Source of the DNA: Lytechinus pictus
Lineage: Eukaryota
Assembly: GCF_037042905.1 (NCBI RefSeq)
Contig: NC_087251.1
Coordinates: 27,218,001 to 27,282,000, forward strand
Direction: 5' to 3'
Length of the DNA: 64,000 nucleotides
This document shows, in pieces, positions 17,061 through 64,000 of the stretch. A program made the position numbers and the translations under genes. The notes beneath the pieces were generated by a model, which did not search any database, was not told where the DNA came from, and saw nothing but the letters and a program-made list of their open reading frames with translations. Within the stretch, counting starts at the first letter, position 1, and each line of letters starts with the position of its first letter.

Positions 17061-18873
17061 GATCTTTCTTTACGAGCTAGCAAACGCCCCCAACCCCATC
17101 CCACCCTTTTTGGTATTGTATTGCAATTCGTAATCAATCACCGCGAGGCTGGTAGCAAAATGAAGAGCCGTTTAATTGGATGATATAGGTGGGATTATAA
17201 AGGGATTAATTTTGATTGATTATATGCTTCGCTATTTGATTTGGATTTAATCCATGTGATATACAGCTGCGTGAATGTGATATGTTGTCATGAACGCGAG
17301 AGACAGGTCATACCGTGCTTATAATACTGTAATATTAACTGCATTTAACACTCGACAACCCTATCAATGTTGCATTTTCAAGGTCTAAAATCAGTATAAT
17401 GGTATAATAGTTTCTGCATTCGCTCATTACTGTTACGATGCAGCAAGATGTACCGCATTAAGCAGTGACTTTGAATATATTATGTTCCAAGGTTATTGTT
17501 ATTGATTAATTGATAACACTCTTTGTTGGATGATAAGAAAATGTACGTCGACTTTTATTTCTACAGGGTTAATCTTAGAATATGAAAAATACTCAAAACA
17601 GATATACAAAAAAGTCATTAGCATGCAGAAATTTTCAGGTGAATCTTAGGAGTTGATATCCCATGATATTTCAAGATTTTTCATTTAATTTGCCCGTTAT
17701 GATTACTATTATGCAGCATTATGATATGGTGTTTTGATGCATAGGAATGGATGTAATTCGAGTTGTAAATGTTATGGAGTCAAAAGAGGGGATTGGGATT
17801 GGAAATATTGATGAACCGAAAGTTGTTGATGTTAAGTTTTTATGTTACGTTTAGAAACAACATGCGTCAAATTAAGTCATACAGTTAGGAAGTTTCTTTG
17901 GACCAAACAATAAGTTAACCTTGTAAAATTAATTTTTGATATTTTATCTATCCTTTAAGTTTTCCTATGTATTTTTGCTCGATTATTGTGGTAGGCTTTA
18001 TAGTCAAGTACAAATCAATTCTTAATCTTCTGCTGAAAATCCATATTTTATTATGATTTGATTCACGTGAATTCTGATTCGATTCTGTTTATAATAATGT
18101 ACATTTTACAATCTGAAAGTCATTATAATTAGTCTTCATCGTTTGTTAAAAAGCTTGATTAGTAAGATGGGAGAGACATTTTTTTTAAACGTTTCTAATT
18201 CGATTTTCCGTCCGCTAATTGCATATTATGAAAGTGACTACTGGAATTCGGCAGATGCCGACAATCTCCGAATTTGATGGCGGAAGGATACAAGAGAGAA
18301 GAGGGTGGAGTGACAGGGAAAAGAGAGAGACAGAGAGAGGGAGTGAGAAAAGGAAAAAGAGATGGGGTAGGGAGTTGCAGTAATTAGATGAAAAAAAATA
18401 ATAGTTTGAATGAAAGAAATGTTATTATTCGACCCCCCCCCCCTCGTCATTCACAGTCTGATTAACTTTTTGGAAATGAAACCGCCTCATATATAAACAA
18501 TCACGTGACATTAATGATTCAGTTTGAAATCCCCAAGTCTTGCACTGGCTCATTCCAGTTATTAAATTTTTACATGATTGGCAAGCATGTTCTCATGGCA
18601 GCTGAGCACACAATATTGAGCTTGCGTCGCATCATCGTGTAATCAGTCTTTCATGTCTAATTATTTCAGATTGACATAATATAACTAACGGGCGAGCTTG
18701 AGCGATTGAGGACAGAGAGAAAGGCAGAGAGTATTTGGAGTGGAAATTTTATTCCCTCTTTAGATACGTCGAAATAAGAATTTGATAATACAGTTTTTTC
18801 TGAGTTGTCCTCGTTGCTGTTAATCTTACTTTTATCTCAGTTCTGGTTTTTGTCTGTATCTTCTCTGTAACAG

Positions 18874-21800
18874 ATGTCGAAGAAAACCAGATTGCCTGCT
18901 CTGGACGGCAGCAAACGCGATGGGAAGTCATCGACCACGGGTACGGGAGCGCCAACGAAGCAGGGCAATAATAAACTGATTGATCCGTCGGATCCCCGGC
19001 GGGGACATATGAGCAAGATGAAATTTCCTAACATCAGTGATACTTATCAATATAGTCAACAGGTAAGCTCACGGACTGACCGGGGGGTTTTGTTTAAATA
19101 AAAGTTTGTAAACAACTAAGCATAAATAATTTAACTGTCTAAAATCTTTATTTAAAAAAACGCAAGAGTATTTTTTGTATTATCGTAGGCACGTATACTC
19201 TTGGTCTTAGAATTTTTTTCCTGACAGACAATGCTGAAAAAAAAAGAACTCGTATTCTTTACACGTTTTCATTGACATCGTCAATAGTTCATGAAATATG
19301 CTATAAAGTGTGAACAGAAATTGTATAGAACATAAAATCTAAATCACGTGGAAGTTACAAATTGATTCAGAAGCCACGCCCTCCAAATTGACGTTTAAGT
19401 TTGTTTATTTATGTTTGACAACAATAGAAAAAGAAACTTAAGAATCGAACATGCTAACACAATCTATTAATTAAAACTGAACTATACATGTACAGCGCGT
19501 CCCAAAAAAAATGTCCCTCTTATATGGGGCTAAATTACTTCAAAAAATTAAAAATGATTCTCCATGAAATGTATTTAACTAGGGAGCTCATCTCATGTTC
19601 TAACTTCTATAAAAAAAATTCAGCCCATTCCAAGTTTGCATGCATGCAGCACTACTGCATGTGTTCTGCACTTTCTAGCATATCAACCCCCTTTGACCAT
19701 TCTGACCAAGGAATTCCCTGATCTGACCAGGGAAATCTCCATGATCTAACCAGGCTCATCAAATCACAACTTTGACCATGTTTAGAAGGGCAAAAACAAT
19801 ATTTGACAGCTCATTTCATGTTTGAAAATGGGGGATGCACAATGATTAAGACATGGGTCATGTTTGTTTCATGCCTAATTCATGCCTAATACTGCATTTT
19901 TTTGTTTTTATTGTTTTTTTTAGTTAATAAGCTACTGTGGTCAAGTTAATTCAATGTACATGTAACTTTTTAAAAGAAAAAAAGTCAAATTTTTCTCTGG
20001 TAAAGTTCCTTTTTTGCAAAGGGTGTTTAACTTGCGGATTCCCCTTTATTTTTTAGCTTATTTTACTCATCCATCATTCACATTTTCTTTCAAGTTGGTG
20101 CACTGATTCCCCTTATCAATCATCAAAAAACTTTATTTTTTTATATTTCTTGCCCTTCTGAACATGCCCAAGTTTATAATTTGATGAGCCTGGATATGAT
20201 TAGGGAAATGTCCCTGCTCAGATCCTGGATGTAAAAATGGGGGTAAACATGCCATAGACAATGCAGATATGCATCAATGCTGCAAACTTGGAATGGGCTA
20301 AAATGCACCACTGTTACGTAACAGAGTGTGTATTCAAAACCGCTGAAGTGAGACCAATGAAATTTTCATAGAAGTTAGATCATGAAATGAGCTTTCTACT
20401 CATGAACATTTATTTGAGAATACTACCACATTTTAGAATTAATTCAGTCCTATGTCAGAGGGACATTTTTTTTGGGACGCGCTGTATAAGCACATGTTAC
20501 AACACCCTGACACTATATTTCCACTAAAGTGTTGTAACTATTTTACTTTACTATGGTTTACTTCAGCTCCTGGTGGATACTTGCATAGCGCTCCATGGAA
20601 TTATTCTCCAGGATCTGAGCATGGGTAAGCGGGAGCTCCTCAAGGATCCTTTCTTCATTCAAGGAAGATTCTATGAGACAATTACGTACATCATGAAACA
20701 ACAGGACAAAACATTAGACCAGGTACTGTAATATCTTTCTCATTCTCCATCTTTCTGTTTTGTTTTTGTTGATAAGTATGTGATTCGACTGGTCTGCAAA
20801 CTGATGCGGATGAATATTTTCACACATATAAGTGAGATGCGATGAATAGCAAGGAAAGGCCTATCATCAAGACGACCCTGCACATTGTGTGTGAGTGACG
20901 TTATATTAATACTGTTGTCTGATGGTTGGCTGAAAGTTTGATTGATCTTTTGAGTTGCGTTTGATTGAAACCCTTTCTGCAACGATCTCACGATTTCATC
21001 TCGCTTAGTCGCAGACCGGTCGGGGGCTTAAGTAGAAAAGTCGGAGAAAGGGGTACAAGAGAGTTGGGGGGGGGGGGTTACCTTGAATTAAGGAGGGGGT
21101 GTCTTTAACCTAACATTAAAACTATAAATTTCGTATTTCTTTCCCAGGTAATGATGGAGCACGAACATCCGAGGTTAAAATACCTTCGTGGTCGAGTCGT
21201 CATCCAACCCAAGATCGACATCGTCCTCGCCCGTCGGAAACCCGAACTCATCTTCGTCTCTTCGCTCATGCTCCGAAAGCGAACAGCCGGATACGAACCC
21301 GACTCGCGAAGCGTCCGGTCAGACATGGCTCGTCTGGCATATCTAGTCTTGGAGAGAGCCTTCTTATGGGGCTTCTATCTATGGATCGGACCGATAGAGG
21401 AATTAAGACATTTTGAAATGATCAATAGTTATTCGGCACTTTGTGAAGCCGATGGACAAAAGAAAAACTACATTGTCTTGCAAAAACATACCTTGGTCTT
21501 GCCTCGACTAGGTAAACCTATACCATCGACTTTCCAAACGACTCTCTTGTTGAACCGGATAGCACCGGATTTTTGTCTAAGGTTGTACCGGGTCGAACCC
21601 GAGATGACGATGTGGGATGACAAGGATGACGATGTTGCTAGGTAAATGCATGTTCTCATATCATGTACTTTCATTATGACTGTATTTGACTTTGCCTTGA
21701 AATTGTGGATTGAACAAATCAATTCATATTATGCAATAAATCAATTTTGGACAGGGGAACTACTGTTGTCAAGCAAAGAATTAGCCTCACAAAATTTAAT

Positions 21801-23011
21801 TTCTATCGAAATGTTTGCCAATTATTTTTTTGTGTGTGTGTGTTTGTGTAAAGATTTTCGGTTATTTTCGTTATATAATTGGGTATACTGAAAGCCCGAA
21901 TAATTTAGAACTTTTCAATTATCTTTGGAATTAAATTGATTCACCTTTTTATAGAAATCCTCATCACATCTCAATATCGGCACTTTCATTTAGTACAAAA
22001 ATTTACCATTTGGTGTGAATTTTCCCCAAATCAGGTTATACGATTTCTACAGCGGCAGTGGGAGCATTCACACAGGGCTTGGGATGTGGGGAATCAGTGA
22101 CCAAATCAAGAATGTGAGAACACAACTCATGAAAATCAGAGACTATGTCGAGGTAAGTAGACACAAAATCAAGGATATCTTGTCCATGGTTTCATATTTC
22201 GTTTTATTTGGTTTAACTTATTCATTACTTAAATAACTTATATGTGAATATATAAATACATCCATTGCCGGCGATGGGGGGGGGGGGGACAAGTCCCCTC
22301 GAATTTTAAATTGTGTACACCAGCCCATGGGTAAGGCTCGTCTTGTTCTCCCAATCCTCCCAGATAGACCAAAAAATCTTACAAAATTACAGCCTATGAT
22401 TTCATCAAACTTAATTTTTAGTATAAGAAATACACTTCTCAGTGCATTTCATTGTACAATGATCATAATATTCGATTCACATTCAATAGTACTGATGAAC
22501 TTTAAGTTTGCTCGTATAAAAAGAGTAAAATATCATCAATACATATGGATATAAATTTGTGGATGGCATTTTGGGTTGTTTATCACTTAAAAAAATAGGT
22601 CTAAAAGTACATGAAGAGAAATAAAGCTATATATTTTTCTCAGTCACTCCCATATAAACGTACAATTGTGTAAGAGATCACAAAAGTTTATTGATTTTTC
22701 CTGATATAAACTGTTTTATTTTAATGACAATTGCTTTGTCACATGCATTTCAATATGATAAGGATGAAAACAAATATTTTCTTTTTTTTCAGGCAAGTCT
22801 ATTTGACCGTGCTCGTGCGATGTTGATGATGGCTCGGGTGATGTTTACGGATCTCGTGGTTGTTAAGAATCTCGAACGGGACGAGATCGAGGAGACGAAC
22901 TATCTTAAACATCACATGGACGAGTTAAAATTGAGGATAGAGGAAGGTTTAAAACAAGGCGCCTGGGACTCCTCCACGGATGATGATATATACAGTGATG
23001 ATGGAAAATAA
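18874..23011 (+). CDS. Uncharacterised protein, paralogue A (391 aa, 5 coding exons); putative PD-(D/E)XK-like fold
   Basis: Exons 18874-19062, 20567-20722, 21148-21641, 22035-22152 and 22793-23011 are all GT-AG with compatible phases (0,0,2,0) and total 1176 nt with no internal stop. Gap-free alignment with paralogue B. AATAAA at 23146. The ATG sits right after an acceptor, so an upstream exon exists. Confidence 0.88.
19493..20484. mobile_element. Non-autonomous Tc1/mariner-type element in intron 1 of paralogue A
   Basis: TA|CAGCGCGTCCCAAAAAAAATGTCCCTCT ... AGAGGGACATTTTTTTTGGGACGCGCTG|TA, with extended imperfect internal symmetry. Confidence 0.85.
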
Positions 23012-24390
23012 CGAGACCATGCAGTTTCTTCGTTTGTGCCTGGTTGATCATTTTCTAAGCGCAATAATGTATCAAATAGTCTGATTCAAATTATAATTAT
23101 GGGGGTGACGAAGTTATGGCATCATCGATACACATTTAATTCATTAATAAACATTACCAAATCTCACCAATGCATCTGTTTGGCCTTGTAGTTTTGAGCA
23201 AAGGTTTTGAACCACCTCAAACGCATCTTATTATCTCAAAAGACGGCAGTGTGGTTGCAGTAATAAGCCTATTCTCATGATTGTTGAAATGGTTGAATAG
23301 TGAAATATATACAAGTAACCGGGCATCACAAGAGGACGGTCCAAGTGATGCATCTTTTAATACAGAGAAAATTAATGTAGGCGATGTTCAATTTTCTCTG
23401 ACGACATTGGATCTCGCGAAAATTCTGTATTGTATATGATTTCGAAGACCACCAACAACCGTTTGTCAACCTGAATGGAACATGTTAAACGTATACAAGG
23501 AACGTCTCCTCAACTTTAGTGAAACTGTTTGAGTATATTGTCTGTCGATTATTTGTTTAATATCAGAATCATTGACACATACAGCAACGTGTACATAATG
23601 GATACATGGTTGTAACGCTTGTCTTATAAAAAATTACATCTTTTCGTCAACCGTTAAAGTGCCAATGAAAGGATTACAATTAGATACATATGCTGCACAT
23701 AATTTTGTCAAATGCGAAATGATATGTTATGACATATTCATCTCCGTTTCAATTTGAAGTAATACATAATGGAAAGAGTAAAAATATAAAATATGCAAAT
23801 AATAAATAATAGTGTTTACCCGAAGGGCCTGTCTTTGAGATCCCATTTTGTTGGAAATTTTCGTCAACCTTTTCGTCAACCCCGAAGTGCTAGTTGACGG
23901 TGAAATGTCAAATGCTACGAACTTGTCTACGGTATATTTCTTTCCTTTTCAATCGAAAACAACGGAAGTTTACAAAATAAATTGGTACAATAGCAATGAA
24001 GTGAGAAGAATACAATAATGGAATATGCATAGTAAGTTTGACCAAGCCTATCCAATGGAGGGACATGTTGGACAGGCAGTACTTTTGGGGAAATACATTT
24101 TTGTTTCACTGTCGCTTTTATAGTGTTAATGCTCTTTTAAAACTATACTTCGGGTTGGAAAGTGAAAATTAAAAAGTGCCAAATCTGAAACTAAACCACG
24201 TTGTTTATGACTGATGTGTGGAAAGCAGGGGTGATAACACAAACAGGTATGCGATTGTAATCGAAAGAGAACAAGAACAATTTTAGTGTCATACGGTCAA
24301 TTACAATAGGGATTAATACATAGTATAGTACACACATTGACAAGAAGAAAAGCGTAGAAAATACACAAATATGCACCTAATTTGAATGAT

Positions 24391-24660
24391 CAAGATTCAA
24401 GATTTATTAAAAACATGTGATCGCAGCTTAAAAGCTGAATTGACAGATGTTTTACAGTTTAAAAAACAATGAACTTAACAAATAAGGAATATAACAAAAC
24501 AATCAAGAAATTTACAGAAATTACAATATAAATTCAAAATATTATGATATTCTCAAGGTAATAGCGGTAATGTACAGTGTAAGATAATAATTGAAAATCT
24601 ATGAGAAGATGCATATTAACTAAAGATTTGAAAGACCGTCTGAAAAGGTTGAGCTATCAT
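24391..24660 (-). mobile_element. Short 3' remnant of a CR1/L2-type LINE
   Basis: The minus strand ends AATAAATCTTGAATCTTG (short tandem tail), and upstream reads LNLFRRSFKSLV, resembling the SL..FK..LK terminus of CR1/L2 ORF2. Confidence 0.4.
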
Positions 24661-25821
24661 TACATATAGTAATGATTATTTGGCCGTCCCTAAATGTGAT
24701 AGTCTCGATTTTGATGCCGAGAAGATGAACATTACAAGAAATTTTTTTAAATTATCATACGAGACCTAAACAAAAATGAAACTCTTTTCTGCTAATGTAT
24801 TTTGGCAACAACAAAAAAATCTGCCGATGTGTGTATCAGTACCTTGATTTGTTTTTATAAACACATTTATTTTTGTTTTATCATCCTCATGCAAGCTCTT
24901 CATTGAAAGGACAAGAACATTACATTTAAAATGAAATTAAAATGTTCAACAAATATTTATAATTTTCATCTTTTCGTTTACTTTATATTACCTGATGTTT
25001 ACGGAGTGAGAGAAATTAATAGAATTCCATTTTGAAGTAAAAAGTGGCGTAGTTGCATTTATTATTGATAAAGGTGAAATAGTTTAAAATAACATGTTGT
25101 CATCTATTATAAGTCCATCATCGATGTATTATTACGGTGAAAGTGTTTTCTATATACTTGAAATGAAAGCAAACAAGGCTCAGTTGCATACGTGCTTTGA
25201 ACATGATATATACAATATATTCCATCATTATTTCGTTCGCGATCCGCAGTGAAAGCGCCAGATGAATGATTAATAATTTCCGTGTTTATCATTCGCTATA
25301 GAAACATCACGGTACAGTGATCCAAAATTAATTTTCTGCCTCATTTTGCATTCTCTCCCCAAACTGGGCATACGTAATTATAAGAATACCAACGTAGGCC
25401 TATGCAGGTGCACTCTAGTAGCAAACTTTAGTTGATTTAGGTTAATCAAATTTGGTGTTGACCAAACAACGGGATCATTCAAGAACGATAACGTGTGGTT
25501 AATTGTCAGTAACAACATATTTCATTTAGATGATTATGTTTACATCGGAAAAACTTTGAAGGTCAAATGAAAACCATGTACTGTTTGTAACGCTGAGAAG
25601 CGGATCCACGACGGAGCACGTGCCGCCCCTTTTACTCAAATTTAGTAGGCCTAGTAGTTCCCTCCCTTTGCGCCTAAAAGATTGAAGACCCTTTTCTGGT
25701 TAATTTTGATTGGATAGAAATTTGGATAAGAGATTCTGCAGTTATAAACTCCCCTCTATAAAAAAAAAAAAAGTGCTCGCCCACCACACCCTCTTAAAAA
25801 ATGACGCTAGACTTCAATACG

Positions 25822-26137
25822 CTGGCTCGTATTCTGAAGTCGGGTTTAACTTAAACCATGGTTTAAGTCTGGTCTCAAATTATGGGGAGCCCAAAAATCG
25901 AAAATTCTGCTTATATTGTCTATTTCTTATATTTACTATTCTGTTACTCTTTGCTTTTATAATGAAGAAAATATTTCAGTTATCATTCTGAGACATTTAT
26001 AAATGATTTGAGTGTCATAGGAGTTAATAAATCGAACATCTACTAATATAGACTTGTGCCCCAATTGGCTTTCCATTGTTAAACTACAACTTTAAACCAG
26101 GGTTTTATTTAAACCCGAGTTCAGAATACGGGCCCAT
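25822..26137. mobile_element. MITE (PIF/Harbinger-type)
   Basis: GGCTCGTATTCTGAAGTCGGGTTTAA ... TTAAACCCGAGTTCAGAATACGGGCC. Confidence 0.7.
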
Positions 26138-26587
26138 GAGGTTATTTCTTTCAAAGATCAGCTAATCTATTTGGGAAGGAAGGCCTGTGGGCCATGGTAA
26201 TTCAGTTTACCTTTTCAAAACCCAGGCAGCCCCTTCATCTCTATTCCAGGTCCTTTGTAATATGTCACCTATGTCCTATTGTTTGTGTGATTTGTATTGT
26301 ACTATAATTTATGTATTTTTAATTGCCGAATAAAATAATAATAATAATTATTATTATTCTTCGCTTTAGGTGGAAATAATTGTTGACGCGGTATTGAACG
26401 GAAAATTTAAACCATTATATGCAACATTTTAATCGCTATGTATTATATTCTTGTATTTTTTAAGCAGAGCAACATGATTCTGGAATGAATTGACTGTGAA
26501 CATGTTTATTATGTATGTTCTTGTATATGAAGAATAAATATATTTATCAAAATTCTTGATGTGATTTCGTGCTTGTCATTATTGATA

Positions 26588-26828
26588 CACTGCAAAAACT
26601 CCAGTGTTGATTTAACACCAGCCTGGAATCTATATATGTCCACACCAGACAGTGTTTAACAACACCAGTTTCGTTTTGGTCTAACACCAGAAAGGTGTTT
26701 ATACAACACCAATTAGTATTAAAACAGCATCGGATTGATTCCAAACTGGTGTTGTTTCAATACTTCTCTGGTGTGGACATATATAGATTCCGGGCTGGTG
26801 TTAAATCAACACCGGAGTTTTTGCAGTG
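26588..26828. mobile_element. CACTG-terminal MITE with TA TSD (EnSpm/CACTA-like), ~65-bp TIRs
   Basis: TA|CACTGCAAAAACTCCAGTGTTGATTTAACACCAGC..GGAATCTATATATGTCCACACCAGA is mirrored at the right end ...TTTTTGCAGTG|TA. Confidence 0.82.
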
Positions 26829-28516
26829 TATGAATAAAATCGACAATAATGGAACATGAATGGAAGAAGATGACGGGAAGGGGGAAAGAAACAATAAGAG
26901 AAAGGGAAAGAGGGGGATGAGTGGAAGATACGCCGAGGGGAGAGAGGGGAAAAGAGGGTTTCGTGTTTTTTAGGCTTTTCAGGGATTAATTGTGTCCAAA
27001 TTAACCAAAATTTTATCAAAATTTACATGATTGTAACTAAAGTAGATTTTTTCGCTCACTTGCTATGCTTGCTCGTGAAATTGCAAATAGAAATTGACGG
27101 TAAGTAAATTGAAAAACAATTTAAAGAATAATTATTTTCCCTAACAAATCATATACAAAGCACAAAAAAATATATAGAAGAATCATGGCAACTCATAATA
27201 ATTTAAGGATAGGCTTTTTTCTTAAGAAACAAAAGAACCCTTTTCGTTGGGCTCCCTATTACTTATTCCTTAAACTGTTGTTATGACGTTCATACATTTC
27301 TTACCGTTTGCACACCACTGAGGCCTCCATACACCATTCAACATAATGGGAGATACACCGACAATTCCCCAATCGATAATCTGATCTATGAATAAGAAGA
27401 GAGGTAGAATAAAGGAAAACTTTAAATAACAAATGGACTTATATTGATTAGAGTTCGTCCGCCCCTTCTTAGATTATCTTTTTTACAATCAATAATATTT
27501 TCTGGTGATTTCAAATATAATCACGTAGTTCGTAGACCCGATTCGCTTCTGGCAAGGTGCAGTTTGTTTGTTTTTTTATCAGATGAATCGCATTCAACCT
27601 TCTTTCAATTTGTATAATTTTTAGAGGAATTGAGGAAGATTTCACAGGAAGACGACAAGATGATTTGAACAGTTTTGATGAACAGTGAGATCGCGTCGGG
27701 CATATTTTATATTACGTGAGTACATTCAGTTTGCACCCCCTTGATAATGTTCGTAAAGAAGTATATTATTATGGATGACTTTCCAATATTTATTTTTGTG
27801 GGCGGGGGGGGGGTCAAATAATTCGAATCAAGCAAATTCAAGTCTTCCCTCTAGCTCTCATGTCCTATGTATTTAGAAATAGTAAATTATTTTCTCAACA
27901 TTTTCCAAATGAACAAAATATTCCATTTGGATTCCCCGTAATACAGTGCGTCCCACAAAAAACTAAACCGAGATTTATCGATGATTTGTTATAACTAAAT
28001 CACAAATACAAGAGACAAATGACCTACCATTGTAAAGCTTAGAATCTCCTCTTTCATCTGAAATTACTTAGATTATTTCTCATTCACGCATGAGTGAGCA
28101 AAAACAATTTGAAGAGGGGATACCAAAAAGTCATTTGGCGGGCTGTATCTGGGTTTCAAAACAAATTCACATTTTTAAAAAGTTCAATATCTGCTCTTTA
28201 ATTTGATACCTCAATTACAGAAAATGGTCAAGAAATAACAAAGTTCTGGTTATTTGAAATAAGGCTTGAATTTCAATAATTTTATAAAATGAAGAGGTTT
28301 TACAAGCTAGCGTTCCAACTCACTCGACACTCCGTTTTGTTGACGATCAGCCATGATTAAGTCTTTTGTTAACCGTGCGATAGCTTCTGTGGGAAACCGG
28401 TTTTTGTGATTAAGGTATCAAATAAAAGAGCAGATATTGAACTTTTTAGGCATGTGATTTTCTTTATGAAATTCAGATCCCCGCCAGATGAGTTTTTGGT
28501 ATCCTTTCTTCAAATT

Positions 28517-31365
28517 TTGATTTTGATTTTCTAGATAAAAAACAAAAAATGTCTACTATTGGTGTCATATATAGAAAACCGGGATCAAATTATGATTTAT
28601 TTTTTGAATTTTACGATAGTGTTATTAACAAATTATGCACTGAACATAGAAAAATTTATATAACTGGTGATTTTAATATTGACTTATTCAAAGATGATGA
28701 TACTGTTAACGAATTCCTCCGACTGAATTCTGTACTAGGTATATTCCCAATTATAAAAACTCCAACTCGTATTACACTAAACACAGCTACACTTATTGAT
28801 AATATATTCACCAATGTTTTGGATTCATATTTTGACTCTGGCAGTCTATGTTCAGACATAAGTGATCATTTACCAATTTTTCTGATCTCCAAATGTTCTA
28901 GTGCTAATTCCCATCAACCTAATACAACTCGCTTTACTCGTAAATACTCAGATGATAATATAAGAAATTTTCAGTATGACCTTTACCAGGAAAAATGGAA
29001 TAGTCTTTATAATATTACAAATGTTAATGATGCATACTCGTTTTTTATAACTCGTTTTATCCAATTGTTTGATAAAAACTTTCCTTTGCTCAAATCTAAA
29101 CCTACCAAAAGGATGTTCAATAAACCATGGATATCAAAGTATTTATTCAGATGCATTAAAAAGAAAAATCGTTACTATAAAAAATTTCTCCAAAATAATT
29201 CATTAGATAATGAAAGGAAATACAAAAAATATAGAAATAAATTGAATACTATGTTAAAGCATGCAAAAAAGATATATTTTTCTAATAAATTAAAGCAATA
29301 CAAAGACAATTCAAAACAGACCTGGTCAGTTATAAACTCACTATTAAACAAACCTAAAACGTCTTTACCTGAATTCTTTTTTAGTGGGAGTGAAAAGGTT
29401 TGTGACCCACAACACATAGCGACTGAATTTAATCAACATTTTATAAACTCCTCCAGACGGATAACCACATCTATAATTAATTCTCATAATGACACTTCTT
29501 ATAAAGATTTTCTCATTGATCATATTGACAAATCCTTTTTCTTAAATCCTATAACAGAAAATGAGGTAATTCAAATATGTAATTCATTAAGTAGTAGCAA
29601 TTCCACTGGATTTGATAATCTCAGTACTAATTTATTGAAAAAAATTATTTTCTATATTGTACAGCCATTGGTATTCATATTTAATCTTTCTCTCTCTACA
29701 GGATCGGTCCCTGATAAGTTGAAAATAGCTAAGATAACTACAGTATTTAAAAAAGAAGACCCTCATAAATTTGATAATTATAGGCCTATATCTATTCTAC
29801 CGTCTATTTCTAAGTTGCTTGAAAAGTGTATTTATAATAGACTGTATTCATTTTGTTTAAACAATAAAATTCTCACAGATTCACAATACGGGTTTAGAAA
29901 AAATCACTCTACTGCACACGCTTTGATAGAATTACAAGATAAAGTTTTGACATCCATTCATACTAATAAATTTTGCATAGGAATTTTCATGGACCTTTCT
30001 AAAGCTTTTGACGTTGTCGATCACAAAATACTTCTTTTTAAATTAGAACACTATGGGGTTAGGGGCTTGCCACTTTCTTGGTTCAAAAGTTATCTTTCTG
30101 ATAGATCCCAATATGTTGTTTTTAATAATAGCTCATCAGACTTTTCCAGTATCACCCATGGTGTACCGCAAGGTTCTATTCTCGGCCCGCTATTGTTTTT
30201 AATTTACATTAACGATCTCATATATTCCTCAAATAAATTTGAATATATTATGTATGCCGATGATACTACTTTAATATACAACCAACCTGATAATCTTAAT
30301 ATACAAAATGATATCAATGTTGAATTAGATAAAGTTACAAAATGGTTCAAATCAAACAGGTTGTTAATAAATCCTAGTAAAACTAATTATATTACTTTTT
30401 TCCATAGGCAGTCTTGCATTTCTAATTTACTTAATGATTTATTGCTTGAAATAGACAAAGTTCCAATTAAAAATGTAAATAGTGTTAATTTTCTAGGTGT
30501 TTATATAGACTATAATATGCAATGGGACACTCATGTTCAAAAAGTCACCCAAAAAGTATCTAAATGTGTTGGTATTCTATATAGGTTAAAAGACTCCCTT
30601 CCAACTTCTGCATTATTGCTATTATACAATTCTTTCATGTTGTCATATCTTAATTATTGTGTTGTTGTTTGGGGCAATTGCAGTCGCACGAAATTAGAAA
30701 AATTATTTAAATTGCAGAAAAAAGCCCTTCGTATATGTATGGGATGTCATTATCAAGCCCATTCTGCCCCACTCTTTCGGAAAATAAAGTCTCTTAATAT
30801 TTATGATTTGTATTATTTTTCTATTGCATTAATTGGTTTCTTTTATTTCCAGAATAAACTACCTCTTAATATCCATAAAATGTTTACCCTTAATCACCGG
30901 ATACATAATCACAATACTCGTTTTAAAGATTCATTTCACCTATGGCCAGTTAAAACAAATAACGTAATGAAATGTGTAAGACATAATTTCCCTGTAATTT
31001 GGAACTCCACCCCTAGAGATGTAATTGAAAGCAAGTCTGTTATAGGTCATTCAAAAAAAGATTGAAGCAGTTCCTATATCTTAAATATGTATAGTTATTT
31101 TTGTCTTGTAGATTGACACCTTTTTATTGTTTGTTTTTCTTGTTTATACATCATGTTTAATTCTTTATCTTATTGTTTCTCTATACCATGTCATGTTATT
31201 AATGTTTTGGGAACTGCGCTTACACAAGGCCACTTGGCTTTATTTATGCAGTTCCCCATTTCATTTTCATTTTTACTCTTGCTTGTAAATATATTGTTTC
31301 TCATACCTTGCTTTATAATTGTTTTTATCGAGAATGAAATAAATGCAAATTGAATTGAATTGAAA
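28517..31365 (+). mobile_element. 5'-truncated CR1/L2-group non-LTR retrotransposon
   Basis: Begins in frame inside the APE endonuclease domain and ends AATAAATGCAA(ATTGA)3A. AAATT is duplicated at 28512-28516 and 31366-31370. Confidence 0.9.
28549..31065 (+). CDS. LINE ORF2 (partial apurinic endonuclease + reverse transcriptase)
   Basis: Endonuclease motifs IYRKP, GDFNID, TLIDNIF and SDHLP. RT motifs YRPISIL, QYGFR, DLSKAFD, GVPQGSILGPLLFLIYIND, YADD and FLGV. Probable frameshift in the last ~10 codons (the alternative frame reads SFKKRLKQFL). Confidence 0.93.
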   Translation: MSTIGVIYRKPGSNYDLFFEFYDSVINKLCTEHRKIYITGDFNIDLFKDDDTVNEFLRLNSVLGIFPIIKTPTRITLNTATLIDNIFTNVLDSYFDSGSLCSDISDHLPIFLISKCSSANSHQPNTTRFTRKYSDDNIRNFQYDLYQEKWNSLYNITNVNDAYSFFITRFIQLFDKNFPLLKSKPTKRMFNKPWISKYLFRCIKKKNRYYKKFLQNNSLDNERKYKKYRNKLNTMLKHAKKIYFSNKLKQYKDNSKQTWSVINSLLNKPKTSLPEFFFSGSEKVCDPQHIATEFNQHFINSSRRITTSIINSHNDTSYKDFLIDHIDKSFFLNPITENEVIQICNSLSSSNSTGFDNLSTNLLKKIIFYIVQPLVFIFNLSLSTGSVPDKLKIAKITTVFKKEDPHKFDNYRPISILPSISKLLEKCIYNRLYSFCLNNKILTDSQYGFRKNHSTAHALIELQDKVLTSIHTNKFCIGIFMDLSKAFDVVDHKILLFKLEHYGVRGLPLSWFKSYLSDRSQYVVFNNSSSDFSSITHGVPQGSILGPLLFLIYINDLIYSSNKFEYIMYADDTTLIYNQPDNLNIQNDINVELDKVTKWFKSNRLLINPSKTNYITFFHRQSCISNLLNDLLLEIDKVPIKNVNSVNFLGVYIDYNMQWDTHVQKVTQKVSKCVGILYRLKDSLPTSALLLLYNSFMLSYLNYCVVVWGNCSRTKLEKLFKLQKKALRICMGCHYQAHSAPLFRKIKSLNIYDLYYFSIALIGFFYFQNKLPLNIHKMFTLNHRIHNHNTRFKDSFHLWPVKTNNVMKCVRHNFPVIWNSTPRDVIESKSVIGHSKKD

Positions 31366-32709
31366 AAATTGTTTTTGCTCACTCATGCGTGAATGAGGAA
31401 TAATCTAAGTAATATAAGATAAAAGAGGAGATTCTAAGCTTTACATTGATAGGTCATTTGTCTATTGTATTTATGATTATGTTATGATAAATCATCGCTA
31501 AATCTCGGTTTCATTTTTTGTGGGACGCACTGTATAAAATCTAATTTCACATCCGTCTGACGACTTGTCTGGTATTTTGCCATTCGTACAATAAACAATT
31601 GTCAGTGCCATGATAGGCAACCATGTAAATTACTATCTAATTAACCTACTATTACAGATGAATCACTCAAATAGCAAACGGCCATGAAAACAAATTAACT
31701 TCCTATATCAATAAAAGGAACAACCTATAAGCACTATTCACAAACAATTATGTTTGGACGATCCCATGGGGTAACTATTGTTGACGCAATGGGTACGAGA
31801 AAATTAAATGACATTTTCATTTATGCCAAACATTGTGAGTCCTTTAGAATCGTCGTGTCAAAATTAATGAAAATAATGGAGAATGTAAAGAGGTTGCAAT
31901 TTAAAGAAATAACAGGGAAGATGATGGGGAGGATAGAAAAAGAAAAATTGAGGGAGAGTGTTTTTTTTTAGAGATATAAATATATGTAACGAGAGAAATG
32001 AGAGGGAGGGAGAGAGGGGTGGGAGAGAGAGGGGGATGGGGGAGGAGGAGAGACCATGAGGAGGGGATGGGAGTCAGAGACTGAGAAGAAAATCTGACAT
32101 AAGCCTATTTTTATTAAGAGGGTAATAAAAGAGCATCATCATAAAAATGGGATGGTTTTACCATGCTCAAGAGATGAATTTCAGGAAATACTAGACCTCA
32201 TCAAACAAACCATTATGCATATTGTAATATAGTTATTGTCACGATGTGTAACTTACGATAAATTTGGGACCAAAAATGGCGCCACATCACTCTTACAACA
32301 GCTTCTCACATCGATTGATGAACGAACCACAAAACACGAACAGCAAATAGAATGATGTGAACGGGTCTGCTCAGATAACTGATGTGGTATGTCAAAAATG
32401 TCATGCGTGTCACATCGGCTTTAGATGTCAAGTTGTTGAAGGCATTCCTACCATGCGTTCTAGTAATGAGAACTAGAATTAATTAACACAGTTCCTAGTT
32501 TATTGCCCTGTCATACCTATCCCATGAGGTGGAAATATAAAAAAATATAAAAAATACGAGTATGACTATCTGTAACTGGATAATATTTCTTTTCGCAAGT
32601 TCCGATAGTTTACTGATAATAATTACAATGAAACTAAAGAACTAAAAATCCAACTTCATAACCCGCAATGTGATTGTATTTTAGCTATCCCAAACTACCA
32701 TATTAAATT

Positions 32710-33330
32710 CATCATTAGCCATCGTCGTCGTCATCATGCATCAGAATTTGATTATCATTATCAACAGCGACGGCAACATCGTCGTTGTCGTCACCATCAT
32801 TATCTTCATCATCATACTCCCCTCGCTACTCCTCCTACGTTTATCTTCTTCTTCTTTTTTTTTTCTCTTTTGCTCCTTCTCCTCCTACTTCTTTTTTTTT
32901 CTTCTTCTTCTTCTCCTCCTCCTCCTTTTTTTCTTCTTCTTATTCACCAGCTTATTTCCGTTCTTCTTTTTCGTCTTCTTTTTTTCTTTTCCATTTTCCA
33001 CCTCTTCTGTTCAATGCCACTATCGTCTCCATTATCACCATCACGATCAACTTATCCACCATCATCATTAACATCAACATCTTCATCATTATCATTGTCA
33101 AGTTCTTTGTCATCTTCTTCATCATCATCATCATTATTATTATTATCAATATCTTTATCAACCATCTTCATCATCATCGTCGTCGTCACCATCATCATCT
33201 TCACCATCGTCATCATCATCATCATTGTCATCATCATCTTCATCATCATCATCATCATCCTCATCATCCTCATTATCATCATCATCATCATCCGTTCCTC
33301 CTCCTTTCCCGCCATCGTCACTACAGTCAT
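32710..33330. repeat. Compound (CAT)n/(TTC)n low-complexity microsatellite
   Basis: Long degenerate trinucleotide runs; all overlapping ORFs are homopolymeric. Confidence 0.92.
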
Positions 33331-33655
33331 CCTTACTGTACATTATATAAATATTTTACTGCTACCTAGAACAGACTTATATAGAAGGAAGATGCTCATG
33401 ATGAAGTCGTTATCATGGTATATCGGCTAGGCAATGAAGCTCTCTTCAGGCTACCGATGATAGTAGTAGTGACAATTATGATGAAACCAATAATTATCTC
33501 CCGCGTTTCAACTATGCCAGCGATTTCCTGCTCATACATGGTGCGTTAAAGACTCGATGGACAGGGGTGTCCGTAAATAGGCACAGTAATGGAAATCATA
33601 TAATGATTTAATGTGTGGAGTCTGCTCAGGCAAAGAATGTTCTGGCACCATTTAA

Positions 33656-34256
33656 AGGACAAGTCCACCCCAACAGAAAGTTGTGTTGAATAAAAAGTGA
33701 AAAATCCAATAAGCATAACACTGAAAATTTCATCAAAATCGAATGAAAAATAAGAAAGTTATGACATTTTTAAATTTCGCTTTATTTCACAAAACAGTTA
33801 AATGCTCATTCTGGTCGGTATGCAAATGAGGGGACTGATGACGTCACCCACTCACTATTTCTGTAGTATTTTACTATATGAAATATTCTGATTTGCTCAT
33901 GAATGTCCTGTGAAACAAAGTTTTCTCCTCACTGAACATGTGGAATGACCACTGTTTTAAAATGTTATGGTTCAATCAAATCGGTCCTTATTGTCAAATC
34001 TTTAAAAAAATGAAATATTGTATAATGCAAACAATAAAAAAATAAAAAAATAAATAGTGAGTGAGGGACATCATCGACTCTCTCATTTGCATATCACTGA
34101 GTTGTGCATATAACTGTTTTGTGAAAACTAAGCGAAACTTTAAAATATCATAACTTTATTATTTTACATCCGATTTCGATGAAATTATCAGCAATGTGCT
34201 TGTTTGATTTTTCTCTATTGATTCAAATCAAAAATTTTCTGGGATGGACTTGACCT
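33656..34256. mobile_element. 601-bp palindromic MITE with TTAA TSD and AGG...CCT ends (Kolobok-type)
   Basis: TTAA|AGGACAAGTCCACCCC ... GGGATGGACTTGACCT|TTAA, with long internal inverted symmetry. Sister copy at 14244-14745. Confidence 0.85.
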
Positions 34257-35697
34257 TTAAAAAATGCAGCTTCTGGGTGCCTCCTGTAAATCAGGTGCAC
34301 GGGTTGAATATACATATATAGGCCTTTAATGGCAAATTCACCATGATCACTTTAATCTTGAAGGGTCGCCTGTATCAGACGACTGGTATATCAATAAGTA
34401 AAGAAGTGAATAAAAGGATGTAAGAATGAATCATGAAAAAAAAAACAAGATCGAAAAAAGAGAAAGAGAGAGAGAGAGAGAAGGAGGAATGACGATGGGA
34501 ATGAGTGGGAGATCTCGTCCTTTACTTCTACTATACTTTTACTTTATTTCTGGACAAAATGTAGATCTGGACAAGAAGCCATTTATAATAATTTTGCAAA
34601 TTAATGTTACTTACAAGTAATGTTTGACAACATCAGAGAAAAAGAATAATCACAATTTTCCGTGCTATCATATGCATAAATTTTTAGGAACAAAACCTGC
34701 GAGAGAAAGTTTAATTAAAAGTGTCCGGACACCCCACCTCCATGCTAACATACCAATCTAGTATACTTCTATAGACCGACTACTTTTTATTTTAATGATA
34801 CTACAAAGTACTGCTACTATAAAATTAACATTATCTCCACCAGCGTAATGACAAGTATCATAATCCCTCCAAGCTTGTATGCAATATGTCAATTTCCAAA
34901 AATGTTTTCAAATAATTATATAATCATCATTGAATCCCTATCCTCAGTGTGTGCAACGAAAACGATTTTGAAAAACATGTCTAGTTTGATATACAATAAC
35001 ACGAAGATATTATTCTCGATATTTTTTCTGTTCTGGTTTTATTTCCTCAGAAAACGAATCCTGGTATTAGCAATCGTTGATATAAACAGAATTAAAAGAT
35101 TAATCAAGTATTTCCGATAGGGGATCAGACAAAATCTGCATGGATTATTGTGTCTCGGTTTTCCTTTTTAGTTGCTGAAATTACTCTTTTCTGTTTATTC
35201 AAACCCACAAGTTCATGTTTGGAAGTAATTGATTGGATATTTCATCAATACAAAAATCCAAGCTTTATGACCATCATGCTCGAATATCATGAGTGTATTA
35301 GTTCTCGGTGATGGATCAGTGACTGATCAGGGGAAATGGGTCTAGAAATCTATCAGGGGTGCGAAAAATAAGGAAAAAAGGGGGCTCCTCTACTACCTAA
35401 ATATAAAAAAATAAGTATAATGGTGCTTATGTATTTCTCGGTGTTTTTGACAAAGGTAGACAAAAGGATCATGTTTGTGATAGCGAAGACGATTACAATG
35501 ATGATGGTGACGACGGCGGCGACGACGATGATGATGTGAATTACGACTCCTGGTGGCGAAAGAAATTGAAATGTGAAGATTGCAAGCATAACACTCGATT
35601 ATAATAACGACTATTTGCAAAGCGAAATGCTATATATAATCTAAACAATTTCTTCACAGACTTACATCCAGTCTTTTCCTCGAGAAACTCTCCAGCC

Positions 35698-38600
35698 ATG
35701 GCGGCATCACAGTACGACAAGCTGCGGGAGAAAAACAAAAAGTACCCTAACATCGACAACCATTACAAATACAACCGATTGGTGATGGAGGATACGTGTG
35801 CAGCTTTGTATGGCATCATCCTGCAAGATATAAGGATGGGAAAAGCTGAACTCCTCAAGGAAGCCAAGTTCATCCAGGGACGTCTGTATGAGACACTCAC
35901 CTACATCCTTGAGAGACAAGGAAAGACTCTAGACCAGGTATGGGATAGGTTGCCGTATTGGGGCGAGTATAATTAATATAAAGATAAAGAAATGCGGGCA
36001 CTGCATAGAAACACAATAACCCATTTACCAAATGATTTTTTAAATTTATTTTTATTTATACCCATTTTCTTTTTATCATATGTTTCTCCTGTAGTGCTAG
36101 TCCTGTGATCAGGGTACTTGTGATGACAACTGGTTTAAAATATTAGAACCATCACCAATTCTAATCCAGTTCGGTTATATTGATATTTGAAATAATTTCG
36201 GTCAAATACTCAGTATTGAAACTGAATAACCTTTCTTCACATTTCTTGACCAGGTCATGATGGAGTTCGAACATTCGAAGATGAAGTACCTTCGAAGTCG
36301 TACCATCGTTCAACCTCGTATTGATATGGTGCTTGCCCAACAAGAACCACAGCAACAGCTCATAACAGCAATAATGATCAGAAAACGAACAGCGGGCTAC
36401 GAACCTGATGTGCGCAGTGTTCGCTCGGACATGGCTAGGTATTCTTTTATTTTTATTTTTTTTGCGAAGTTTAAGGGGGAGATGGATGGGGTGCACCGTG
36501 AGAGCCCTTCAGATTCGTTCAATATGCTACACAATATGTCTTTGTTTTAATACATTTAGTTTCTTGATTTATGTTTGTTTCATTAGTGATAAACCTGTAA
36601 TATGAGAGTTTTTAATTCAATAATTTGGTTAATTGAATTATTGAAACAGGTTAGCCTACCTCATCCTGGAGAAGGTCTTCCGCTTCGCCTTTTACATCTG
36701 GATCGGAACGCTGGAAGAGCTCCGGCACCAAGAGATGACACACAGCCTGACCACGCTATGCGAGGCCGAGGGCGAGATCAAGAACCATCTCGTCCTCCGT
36801 AAGCACACCCTGGTCATGCCGAGGATCGGTAAACCCATCCCGTCAACGTTCATGACGACGCTCTTGGTTAATAAGATCTCTCCTGATTTCTGCGTGCGGC
36901 TCTATAGGGTGGAACCGGAGTCCTCCATGTGGGATGATAGGGAGGATGACGTCACAAGGTGATTTTTTAGTTTTTTATTTGTTTGTTATAGGTGCTTGGA
37001 TAAAAGACAAGTTTATGCAAGTGATACATCTTAGTGTTGGTTCCAACAAGACAGGTGATTCTCCGACAGAGAAAATAAAATGGATAACAATAGGCCTCCT
37101 TATATAGTATTCAATGATCACATGTCAATTGTTGCCATGGCAGGCAATGTCATTCTATATTCTAATCGTATACTTACCGGCAAAATAGCGCATTCCGATT
37201 CCAGTTGTTTAGTTGTACTATTATGCAATGTCTTGTTGTTCCCGGGAGGGAAACTAGTAGGAGAAATCAAGTCTACATGTATTGTCAGAAATAGATATTT
37301 CTGTGTCTAAAGAGTATACGGTATAATTTAGTTGGATATGCCTACTCGGTCTACTTAATTTGCAAATGTTACAGAAACATTTTATCGAATGGCGAGTATC
37401 ACGATATTGCAATACCCTTACAGTACATGATCTTGTAAATATATTACAGTACTGTAATTGATTTTGATGCTATTCTTTAAAAAGATATTGATTTGATTTA
37501 GCCTACGCGTTGGTATGATGTAAAATCTTGTTTATCACAACATTTCTATTATTTTATGTTCCACATTCTTTCTTCAACAGGTTACATGATTTTTATAGCA
37601 GTAATTCTCAGCTCAATACAGGCTATGGTATGTGGGGTATTAGTGGTCAGATAAGTAACGTTAGGAACCAAGTCAAGAAAGTTCGTGACTATGTCGAGGT
37701 AAGATTGCAACTTCACTTAATTTACAAATAAATATCAAGGCACATCATGTACCCCTCATTTTATATTTATTAAGACAGAAAAAAATTGCTGGAAACATAT
37801 TTATTTTAAGAAATTAAGGTAAAAACAATAATTAGATGGTTTTTTCAGCCGCCCCCTTGTGTATGCACCAAAATAGAGCAGCCTAAATAAGACTTTCTAT
37901 TTCATAAAAGAAAAAGAAAAAACCCTTTATATTTCGCATTGCTAATAAATGGTAGTCACTGATGATTGACTGAAGCAAATTAATGTGAGTTCTCTCATAA
38001 AATATTGAGTTATCGACAAATATGTTTGCAAATGTTCTGCCACCAACAATTACGTTATGGGGTGTCTTGATAATAATAATGATAACAATAATAATTATAG
38101 CCAATTTTCATATAGCGCCTTTCCCAGAATGGCTCAAAGTGCTTTACAGCATATATATTATTACCACGGTCATTGGATTCATTTCAATCCCGCACGAAAA
38201 GTGCACAATTGTGTCTTAGCAACGAAACGCAAACATTTTCTGTTGAACCGTAATGGTATTGGGCTACTCTTGTTTTATGCATTCCCTTTAAAGAATACAT
38301 GGGCCCGTTTTATAATGAGTTGCGACGAATGTAACTTAGCAGTCATGTTAACTAGCAAGGTAACAAGGCTCAGCAGCCAATTGCAATCAAGGTTTCCATG
38401 GTAGTTACATTAAAGGCATCTTTACCATTGTAAGTCTCGGTGAAATGGGCGCCGGTTCCCATCGAAGAAATAATTGATTTCCGGGGGGTGAAGGTGGAGA
38501 AAGGGGGTAGTAGGTGGGGAAATTATTTAGACAAAAGTTAGGAATATTTAGACGGAGGTGGGAGATGCCCATTATTCTATGAAAAACAAACAAACCCCAA

Positions 38601-39690
38601 TTGTTTAAACATCTTGTATCATGCGAAGTAATTCACACCCCTTCTTCTTCTTCTACTTAAGTTTAAGTGATAATTTTAAACTAAATAAGAAGCGTAGTAA
38701 TATTTTCAATAATAATTTTGGTGATTTAATGTTAGGGTTGCTTAAAACTAACGGTTTTCGAGCACAGCGTTTCAATAATTATATTAAGAAAGTACGTGCC
38801 TTCATTTGGCTACTAAAATCAAATTACTGCAAGTCAATGCATTTGATCAATAAAATACGCATTATGATAAAAGAGCCAGACGATGCCATAGACATTTATT
38901 GACATTAATGGGGCGCATTCGATATTTGCAATGGTTTCATTAATCATTATTCTTCGATAGATTAGACATTAAGAGGCCAGGTTATATGTTGAATATGATA
39001 TCGTGACTGTTACTGTTATTTTCATTATTATTATTATCATTGTTATTATCATTATTATCATGATTATACTTATTGGTAGTTTAATATTATTATCATTATC
39101 ATCGTTATCAGTAATAGTAGGCATATTCAAGTAGTAGTGTAGTAGTAGTATAGTAGTAGTAGTAGTAGTAACAGTAGTAGTAGTAGTAGTAACAGTAGTA
39201 GTAGTANNNNNNNNNNNNNNNNNNNNNNNNNNNNNNNNNNNNNNNNNNNNNNNNNNNNNNNNNNNNNNNNNNNNNNNNNNNNNNNNNNNNNNNNNNNNNN
39301 NNNNNNNNNNNNNNNNNNNNNNNNNNNNNNNNNNNNNNNNNNNNNNNNNNNNNNNNNNNNNNNNNNNNNNNNNNNNNNNNNNNNNNNNNNNNNNNNNNNN
39401 NNNGATCGATATTGCTTTGCATTCAAAGCACCAATTTATTTAATTTTGTTTTAATTACCCCCTTCCCCCTCTCTTACAAGGCAAATCTCTTCGACCGTGC
39501 TCGAGCGATGCTGATGATGGCTCGAGTGATGTTCACCGATCTCCTGGTCGTGAAGAACCTTGAGAAAGACGACGCAGAGGAGACAGACTACCTCAAACAT
39601 CTCCTGGATGAACTCAAAGTCGAAATTCAGCAGGAATTGGAGAAAAGAGAAGGATTGTCGACATCGGAATCGGACGAGAGTGATGATTGA
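35698..39690 (+). CDS. Uncharacterised protein, paralogue B (353 aa, 5 coding exons); putative PD-(D/E)XK-like fold
   Basis: Exons 35698-35937, 36254-36438, 36650-36958, 37581-37698 and 39481-39690 are GT-AG with phases 0,2,2,0 and total 1062 nt open. Exons 2+3 sum to 494 nt and exon 4 is 118 nt, identical to paralogue A exons 3 and 4. GCCATGG Kozak context; acceptor at 35659. Confidence 0.88.
38068..38200 (-). mobile_element. 3' fragment of an L2-related SINE/LINE
   Basis: The minus strand reads GTAAAGCACTTTGAG...GAAAGGCGCTATATGAAA followed by an (ATT)n tail, like the L2-type 3' stem-loop. Confidence 0.5.
39010..39206. repeat. (ATT/ATC)n then (TAG)n microsatellite abutting a gap
   Basis: Direct inspection. 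Confidence 0.9.
39207..39403. other. Assembly gap (N run) inside the last intron of paralogue B
   Basis: Run of N. Confidence 0.99.
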
Positions 39691-63573: not shown

Positions 63574-64000
63574 CTGGAGAAAAACAGATAAGTGATGAAA
63601 TTTGGTTCAAAATGAGGTTGATCATTACCATATTTTCCCAGTGACTCACTTCAGCAGTTTGACATCACGAAAGTAATGTTGACCTTGCCCTTCTTTTCCA
63701 TCTGGAATCACAGGTTTGGTTTTCAACCCAAGGAATTTTTTTTCACATTAAAGGATCAGATCCACGCGATTGTCAAACATCTAACCTGCCTGAAACATTA
63801 CGTACACAACCACCATTATATTAAGAAATTACATCACCTTCCTTTTGACATGGCATAATTTATTATACTCTCTTCTCATTTACCTCAACCCACCCCAAAA
63901 AGTTAAGTAGCCTTGCCAACCTGGTGGTGACATGTAATAAAGAAAATGAGCAGAATATCTCGCTACCAGTGATAGGAATATTTTAAGGTCATGATTGGAT

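Follow-up and report, generated by a model that had tools for sequence, protein, structure and literature searches.

A tandem gene pair of the sea urchin Lytechinus pictus represents an Ambulacraria-restricted family with a predicted PD-(D/E)XK-type core and a putative conserved, non-canonical pocket

Two adjacent genes, here named A and B, were analysed in a 64,000-nucleotide window of the Lytechinus pictus genome (contig NC_087251.1, positions 27,218,001 to 27,282,000), and all coordinates below refer to this window. Both genes are spliced and expressed, lie on the plus strand and were rebuilt from six-frame open reading frames (ORFs) and inspection of splice sites; gene A encodes 391 residues counted from the ATG at 18874 and gene B encodes 353. 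Taken together, the evidence indicates that A and B are probably a tandem pair from an Ambulacraria-only family in which a core of PD-(D/E)XK fold carries a conserved ligand pocket. The family is previously undescribed and restricted to Ambulacraria, and it combines a known fold, as predicted by modelling, with an unusual conserved site. Its members are apparently soluble proteins of about 350 residues, laid out as a variable N-terminal tail, a mildly basic core of about 235 residues, a three-helix bundle and an acidic tail.

The fold was predicted by AlphaFold2 with a 16-sequence family alignment and B as the target, and residue numbers are those of B throughout. The full-length model reached a mean predicted local distance difference test score (pLDDT) of 84.5 and a predicted template modelling score (pTM) of 0.83, and the core folded alone (residues 18-256) reached a pLDDT of 87.5 and a pTM of 0.87, with the five core models spanning pLDDT 71.5-87.5. 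Secondary structure assigned by DSSP in both models gave the core elements as helix 56-73, strands 81-86, 102-110 and 114-122, helix 136-148 and strand 154-161. Three N-terminal helices, of which 56-73 is the last, precede the core strands, and strand 154-161 is followed by further helices and strands, a long hairpin (208-231), a helix (242-253) and the long helices 265-284, 288-307 and 313-343. At the level of element order, the alpha-beta-beta-beta-alpha-beta topology that defines the superfamily is present in the models. The first-pass annotation had proposed this order from the sequence, and the models agree with it element by element, the motifs it quoted falling on the predicted elements as assigned.

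Structural searches of the models, which the first-pass annotation had suggested, returned mostly PD-(D/E)XK-fold proteins from four libraries. Because the whole-model VIA search was flooded by generic helical matches of the C-terminal bundle, the core folded alone was used instead. In the VIA-wide search with this core, at least 40 of the top 50 chains were PD-(D/E)XK-fold proteins by their entry titles, with Z falling from 7.0 to 3.7. The best matches were 3ijm (Z 7.0 over 122 residues), CinB (6.3), BglII (6.2), OkrAI (6.0) and DUF820 (5.8), joined by EcoRV, Rep15, BamHI, TT1808, BpuSI, Cas4, NgoMIV and HsdR, and further by Can2, Card1, tRNA-splicing endonucleases, Hjc, EcoRII, SduA and RecU. 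Foldseek against the AlphaFold database clusters ranked DUF4143 first (E 2e-7), then NERD, YqaJ, restriction endonuclease and HsdR-N clusters down to 1e-3, and the Swiss-Prot models retrieved were RecB, AddA, Cas4, SfsA and UPF0102. By structure, the ESM Atlas gave a bacterial cluster with template modelling (TM) scores of 0.65/0.61 over 187 residues at 3.2 Å, as well as HSDR_N_2 and PDDEXK_3 clusters; its feature search yielded scores of 0.75-0.84, which are to be read as leads only, and the weak language-model neighbours were restriction-enzyme families. Since these moderate scores from separate searches all point one way, the core very probably adopts the PD-(D/E)XK (restriction-endonuclease-like) fold.

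The predicted core carries a set of strictly conserved residues. Invariant in 16/16 sequences are E84 (beta1), P101 and D104 (start of beta2) and K124 (just after beta3), together with Y129, P131, D132, R134, D139, M140, R142, L143 and A144 in the loop and helix alpha2. Several residues of the distal hairpin are likewise invariant among the 16 sequences, and an acidic residue (E or D) occupies position 65 of alpha1 in each of the 15 sequences covering this position. Motif II is present as P101-x-[IV]-D104, and the end of beta3 reads [MYV]121-[ILMV]122-[RKTN]123-K124 in place of the canonical (D/E)-x-K motif III. Given that K124 never varies while R123 is replaced by K, T or N, and that positions 120, 122 and 124 would be expected on the D104 face of the hairpin formed by 102-110 and 114-122, the beta3 motif is more likely a hydrophobic-x-K that retains the Lys but has lost the middle acid. 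E84 on the neighbouring strand is a candidate second acid. The site is certainly non-canonical. The first-pass annotation had read a kept motif II Asp with M-x-R in place of E-x-K: D104 and the absence of the canonical acid stood, and the assignment of the Arg is doubtful, as R123 varies and the invariant K124 is the likelier equivalent of the Lys. Comparable E/D/K sets, which an active site in A and B would resemble, occur elsewhere in the superfamily: Tn7 TnsA is a PD-(D/E)XK enzyme with a migrated acid and uses E63/D114/K132. An invariant Glu/Asp/Lys set lacking the usual middle acid makes the family a useful case for how such sites get remodelled or retired.

Several observations weigh against placing the family in this superfamily or assigning it a nuclease-like pocket. 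No sequence or profile link to any PD-(D/E)XK family was found, and hhalign of the family profile against 29 Bacteroidota DUF4143 domains gave a probability of 0.2%. Foldseek against the PDB retrieved the same kinds of protein, yet 0 matches at E <= 1e-3, and the best Z of 7.0 lies below the tool's caution line of 8, so that the structural scores are moderate. The AlphaFold2 model was built on 16 fairly similar sequences. At the site itself, the residue two before K124 is hydrophobic (I/L/M/V) in every member and the canonical acid is absent; the proposed clustering of E84, D104 and K124 in space derives from strand limits rather than coordinates, and any binding of nucleic acid is a prediction from the putative pocket. 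More widely, searches of Pfam, NCBIfam and PDB by sequence and profile, made with exon pieces, whole proteins and family alignments, returned nothing above threshold; it is solely the predicted structure that argues for kinship to known families. A mapping of catalytic residues through the DUF4143 alignment was dropped, an alignment at the hhalign probability given above being meaningless.

C-terminal to the core, residues of about 262-343 form an antiparallel three-helix bundle in the model. The helical bundle noticed by the first-pass annotation is thus real and consists of three helices, although its matches are generic: in the full-model search it matched MIT domains, TPR, spectrin and designed bundles at a Z of about 10, which is under the tool's noise line for helical proteins. 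Sub-threshold matches to Pfam DUF5847 (PF19165) were observed on the C-terminal helices in 7/16 members, with a best score of 21.4 bits against a cut-off of 27; they cover residues 306-370 of member P0010 and the equivalents elsewhere, corresponding to about 22080-23000 and 37620-39640 in the window. No mention of DUF5847 was found in the literature searched, and a genome search with it was uninformative. The extreme C-terminus is acidic (a Ser/Asp/Glu tail). The core has an isoelectric point of 8.3-9.3 in 14/16 sequences and of 7.8 and 5.5 in the remaining two. The N-terminal tail of A is about 40 residues longer than that of B and strongly basic, with a net charge of +7/+8 in the S. purpuratus and Diadema orthologues. 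A heterodimer of A and B joined through the bundle, as the first-pass annotation had ventured, obtained no support: most species carry a single gene, and the complex prediction with A (55-397) and B (14-353) gave a score of 0.00, which counts neither for nor against it.

We propose that the pocket would be formed by Glu84 (beta1), Asp104 (P-x-[IV]-D, start of beta2), Lys124, the alpha1 acid and the invariant Y-x-P-D-x-R...D-M-x-R-L-A loop and helix, that it may bind a phosphodiester ligand, most likely nucleic acid, and that the three-helix bundle would serve as the part making protein contacts. Because the (D/E)xK acid is hydrophobic in every member, the protein would be either a binding-only derivative or a non-canonical E-D-K-type metal-dependent nuclease. 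The former has close to an even chance, and catalysis by the latter is conceivable but somewhat doubtful.

In an active enzyme, Glu84 would replace the beta3 acid (E...D...K), and DNA or RNA would be cut, perhaps in repair, transposon control or defence. The invariance of E84, D104 and K124 in 16/16 sequences, including a very long-branched Ptychodera paralogue, speaks for this, as do the acid at 65 in 15/15, the invariant Arg residues near the site and the fact that the nearest structural neighbours are mostly active nucleases. Against it stand the I, L, M or V two before K124 throughout and the lack of sequence homology to any active family; furthermore, the geometry is deduced rather than seen, and the invariance could equally mean ligand binding or folding. 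The suggestion of a pseudo-nuclease in the first-pass annotation fits the loss of the canonical beta3 acid, but the label was premature, given E84, D104 and K124 in every sequence and the E or D at position 65.

An unlikely alternative is that the core is a pseudo-nuclease serving purely as a protein-interaction scaffold, with the bundle as a second binding surface. Rep15 provides the model: this vertebrate Rab15/Rab3 effector (PDB 8a4a/8a4c) binds Rab GTPases, and its authors describe an Hjc-like fold with a role other than cleavage (PMC9308819), so that in animals, too, the fold can serve in protein binding alone. It is among the matches of the family (VIA Z 5.6; Foldseek E 0.075), the canonical beta3 acid is lost, and the bundle is shaped like MIT-type interaction domains. 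On the other hand, Rep15 scores no better than restriction enzymes, no sequence link between it and the family was seen, the bundle matches lie under the noise line stated above, and a mere scaffold would not be expected to keep three catalytic-type residues strictly unchanged.

It is improbable that the assigned fold is an artefact, namely a generic three-layer alpha/beta or novel fold for which AlphaFold2 was misled by a shallow alignment. The alignment of only 16 sequences, the range of core pLDDT, a pLDDT of about 60 in the single-sequence ESMFold2 prediction, the best Z of 7.0 and a few non-nuclease matches, among them extracellular domains of sensor kinases (Z 4.1-4.2), would fit such an error. 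It is opposed by the element order shared by the full-length and core-only runs, by the convergence of four libraries and two aligners on one superfamily, with restriction-enzyme families as language-model neighbours, and by the sequence-only reading that had predicted identical elements.

The range of the family was established by remote searches. phmmer with the 165-residue core exon of A against 1.84 billion representative proteins gave five matches, and word-indexed searches among 5.8 billion proteins gave 13 clusters with a sea-star orthologue, 16 with the core profile and 5 with the most divergent member. Named members come from sea urchins (Strongylocentrotus, Lytechinus and Diadema), sea stars (Patiria, Asterias and Acanthaster), a brittle star (Amphiura), sea cucumbers (Holothuria and Apostichopus), feather stars (Antedon and Anneissia) and hemichordates (Ptychodera, Saccoglossus and Glandiceps), most species holding one gene copy. 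Queried with exon 3, with the core profile and with the most divergent member, the sets of 1.84 and 5.8 billion proteins yielded no homologue outside Ambulacraria. All members are labelled 'uncharacterized', and eleven family LOC identifiers had no mention in the literature searched. The first-pass annotation had recognised no named metazoan family; the lack of any Pfam match above threshold and of any characterised member bears this out, and the question of range that it had raised is answered as Ambulacraria only. Conservation over all five echinoderm classes and hemichordates indicates that the family dates from the origin of Ambulacraria. The PD-(D/E)XK superfamily is known mostly from prokaryotic nucleases, and the family would be a rare animal-specific branch of it; this placement provides a first testable hypothesis for an unannotated family. 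L. pictus is a genetically tractable urchin in which knock-outs are feasible.

As to origin, it is likewise improbable that the core came from a bacterial PD-(D/E)XK gene by horizontal transfer into the ambulacrarian ancestor, as opposed to descending from an older eukaryotic gene. Such a transfer would account for the absence of homologues outside Ambulacraria, for the bacterial best structural neighbours and for the location of residues 1 to about 285 in one exon in sea star, sea cucumber and acorn worm (with one additional N-terminal intron in the feather star). Nevertheless, no bacterial protein resembles the family in sequence, genes with few introns are common, and bacterial top matches are expected from PD-(D/E)XK structure libraries that are mostly prokaryotic. 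The boldest version, in which a horizontally acquired, nearly intron-less bacterial defence-type nuclease kept a working E-D-K site, became a lineage-specific nuclease (e.g. in genome defence or innate immunity) and was duplicated in urchins into a basic-tailed A and a tail-less B, is very improbable.

The gene models were resolved exon by exon, all introns of both genes being of the GT..AG type. For gene A, the coding exon at 18874-19062 (+) contains the basic disordered N-terminal tail with the internal ATG and is joined to the next exon by a contig joint at 19062/20567 with GT..AG ends. It is followed by the exon with the N-terminal helices, including helix alpha1 (FIQGRFYETITY), at 20567-20722 (+), and by the exon of the PD-(D/E)XK-like core at 21148-21641 (+), which encodes strands beta1-beta4, helix alpha2 and the distal beta-hairpin; both are based on transcript contigs, the A/B alignment and the AlphaFold2 model. 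The linker and the first helix of the C-terminal bundle are encoded at 22035-22152 (+; contig joints 21641/22035 and 22152/22793), and bundle helices 2 and 3, the acidic tail and the stop at 22793-23011 (+; contigs and alignment). The 3' untranslated region (UTR) reaches at least to 23700 in transcript contigs. An alternative first coding exon of A (MNGKFM, RefSeq isoform X1) lies at 9996-10013 (+), where the motif is followed by GTATGT, and is spliced to the acceptor at 18873/18874.

For gene B, exon 1 (35698-35937, +) encodes the short N-terminus and the N-terminal helices and equals exons 1 and 2 of A without the private intron of A (100% RefSeq identity). Exon 2 (36254-36438, +) encodes beta1-beta3 with E84, D104 and K124, and exon 3 (36650-36958, +) encodes alpha2, beta4 and the distal hairpin (RLYRVEP), both based on RefSeq identity and the AlphaFold2 model. 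Exon 4 (37581-37698, +) encodes the linker and first bundle helix, and the last coding exon (39481-39690, +) bundle helices 2 and 3, the acidic tail and the stop (alignment and RefSeq identity for both). The two lengths given by the first-pass annotation were reproduced exactly by the rebuilt models, and the spacing it had put at about 12.7 kb is 12.7 kb from the stop of A to the ATG of B.

Transcript support for splicing, on which the first-pass annotation had made the gene pair depend, was obtained: 4/4 introns of A were confirmed as joints (19062/20567, 20722/21148, 21641/22035 and 22152/22793) in transcript contigs from two studies. Contig mapping covered the window from 18300 to 23700, that is, gene A, and the splice joints of B rest on sequence and RefSeq identity. 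One transcript contig extends a further 204 nt upstream of 18873, into sequence mapping outside 18300-23700. A 118-nt exon, shown by contigs in A, is common to A and B, and both genes would be out of frame without it. Probable RNA runs hold 0.36 of the words of the A stretch and 0.20 of those of the B stretch, equal to the exon fraction of each locus; raw RNA-seq reads gave hardly any depth over the exons of A at 6% sampling. All 353 residues of B agree with the L. pictus RefSeq protein of LOC129265870, and the 391-residue A lies wholly inside isoforms X1 and X2 of LOC129265871, each of which adds 6 residues from alternative upstream exons; both loci are annotated 'uncharacterized protein'.

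The last intron of B (37699-39480) contains a non-coding assembly gap at 39207-39403, which ends 77 nt upstream of the acceptor. The acceptor after the gap is normal and pyrimidine-rich. Nothing points to a hidden exon in this intron, because the B exon 4/5 junction VRDYVE/ANLFDRA is colinear with that of the B orthologues in L. variegatus, S. purpuratus and Diadema and with all other family members, and corresponds to the RNA-confirmed junction of A.

The two proteins share 65% identity over 339 aligned residues, and the alignment is interrupted only once, by a 1-residue gap close to the C-terminus. A gap-free alignment of about 330 residues at about two-thirds identity had been claimed beforehand; the identity holds, and the absence of gaps has to be given up for this one residue. 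blastn of the A locus against the B locus gave four exon pairs only, with no match in introns or UTRs, and the nonsynonymous difference per site (pN) was 0.21 with synonymous sites saturated. On the strength of this pN at synonymous saturation, the A/B duplication dates far back and purifying selection acts on both copies, in agreement with what the dissimilar introns and UTRs had led the first-pass annotation to state. Searching the 812-Mb assembly with the family profile returned nine exon matches, all within the window, so that the genome holds exactly two copies. The maximum-likelihood tree matches the species tree, and in it A and B separate within echinoids, earlier than Diadema and camarodonts diverged (support 99/98; 100 for each clade). 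In Diadema, the A gene (395 residues) is followed about 8.3 kb downstream, on the same strand, by the B gene (351 residues). Since Diadema keeps the tandem order, this order is ancient: the head-to-tail A-B arrangement arose in the echinoid stem and the genes have been adjacent since before the Diadema split. In Diadema antillarum, the pair was seen in the same arrangement on two contigs (1.45 Mb and 2.33 Mb; L163 26992-28660 and L164 1-1523), which are probably haplotigs or an assembly duplicate.

The Patiria, Holothuria, Antedon and Ptychodera orthologues share one common coding intron, after residue 284, with one more near the N-terminus in Antedon. Diadema A and B have three introns each, which follow residues 80, 244.67 and 284. 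Each L. pictus gene has a fourth, which differs between the two: 19063-20566 in A and 36439-36649 in B. These counts and positions across outgroups, Diadema and L. pictus imply that introns would have been gained stepwise, two before the duplication and one private to each copy after the Diadema split. The locus would thus record stepwise intron gain in a dated series. Logan fragments terminate at ...DMAR, which suggests that the private intron of B may also be present in another camarodont sea urchin. An identity of the private introns as introners was considered and rejected; that of B is single copy, and that of A holds a nested repeat but isn't one itself. This repeat, at 19491-20486, is a foldback/MITE-like (miniature inverted-repeat transposable element) element of about 1 kb. 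Its inverted arms are nested, and those at the ends measure 56 nt at 88%, starting TACAGCGCGTCCC. Many chromosomes carry near-full-length copies with 91-98% identity, at least 40 in total, and both strands of the element showed very high RNA depth, in contigs as well as in raw reads.

Other features of the window were recorded as well. In the spacer between A and B, an unbroken 838-residue ORF of long interspersed nuclear element (LINE) type with an RVT_1 domain (E 1e-38) lies at 28549-31065 (+), and low-complexity simple-sequence DNA at 32736-33430 contains long ORFs that overlap and are rich in Ser/Phe/Leu, His and Ile or, on the minus strand, in Asp/Met; no test that was run supported a gene in 32736-33430. 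The next gene downstream of B is a single-exon 456-residue ORF at 42434-43804 (-) with both GT10 fucosyltransferase domains (E 5e-45). An ORF with a zf-RVT domain at 2-781 (+) is probably the 3' part of a LINE, and a 447-residue ORF at 62306-63649 (-) has no Pfam match. The segment 46001-48000 is purine-rich with a GC skew of 0.53, and its only repeat is a short 18-nt tandem repeat at 46918-46988.

Among known systems, DUF4143 (PF13635) is the best Foldseek match in the AlphaFold database clusters, extending over about 230 residues with TM 0.42-0.61. In bacteria and archaea, DUF4143 usually forms the C-terminal domain of AAA_14 ATPases. It differs from the family in its canonical D...E-x-K in the 29-domain alignment and in the hhalign result given above, the AAA_14 partner domain is absent from A and B, and the L. 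pictus genome has no DUF4143 match. Rep15 resembles the family in being a deuterostome protein with no Pfam domain and in a structural match extending over 138 residues, but lacks the C-terminal helical bundle and is no closer than bacterial nucleases; it was not retrieved by PDB sequence searches with exon 3 or the family profile, the likeness being structural. MIT domains (Vps4, katanin p60, MITD1 and NRBF2) superpose on the bundle with Z 9.8-9.9 and a root mean square deviation of 2.0-2.5, whereas the family has no MIT Pfam match, TPR, spectrin and designed bundles score equally, and these Z values are below the noise level. The closest comparison is with the PD-(D/E)XK superfamily as a whole (BglII, OkrAI, BamHI, EcoRV, Cas4, Hjc, RecU, CinB/CidB, DUF820/Uma2 and the HsdR N-terminal domain), with which the predicted core shares its element order, the Asp that follows a Pro where beta2 begins, the Lys at the end of beta3 and the upstream Glu. 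The family departs from it in having no detectable sequence similarity, a hydrophobic residue in place of the (D/E)xK acid and a distribution limited to Ambulacraria, and it adds N-terminal helices, a distal beta-hairpin and a C-terminal three-helix bundle to the common core.

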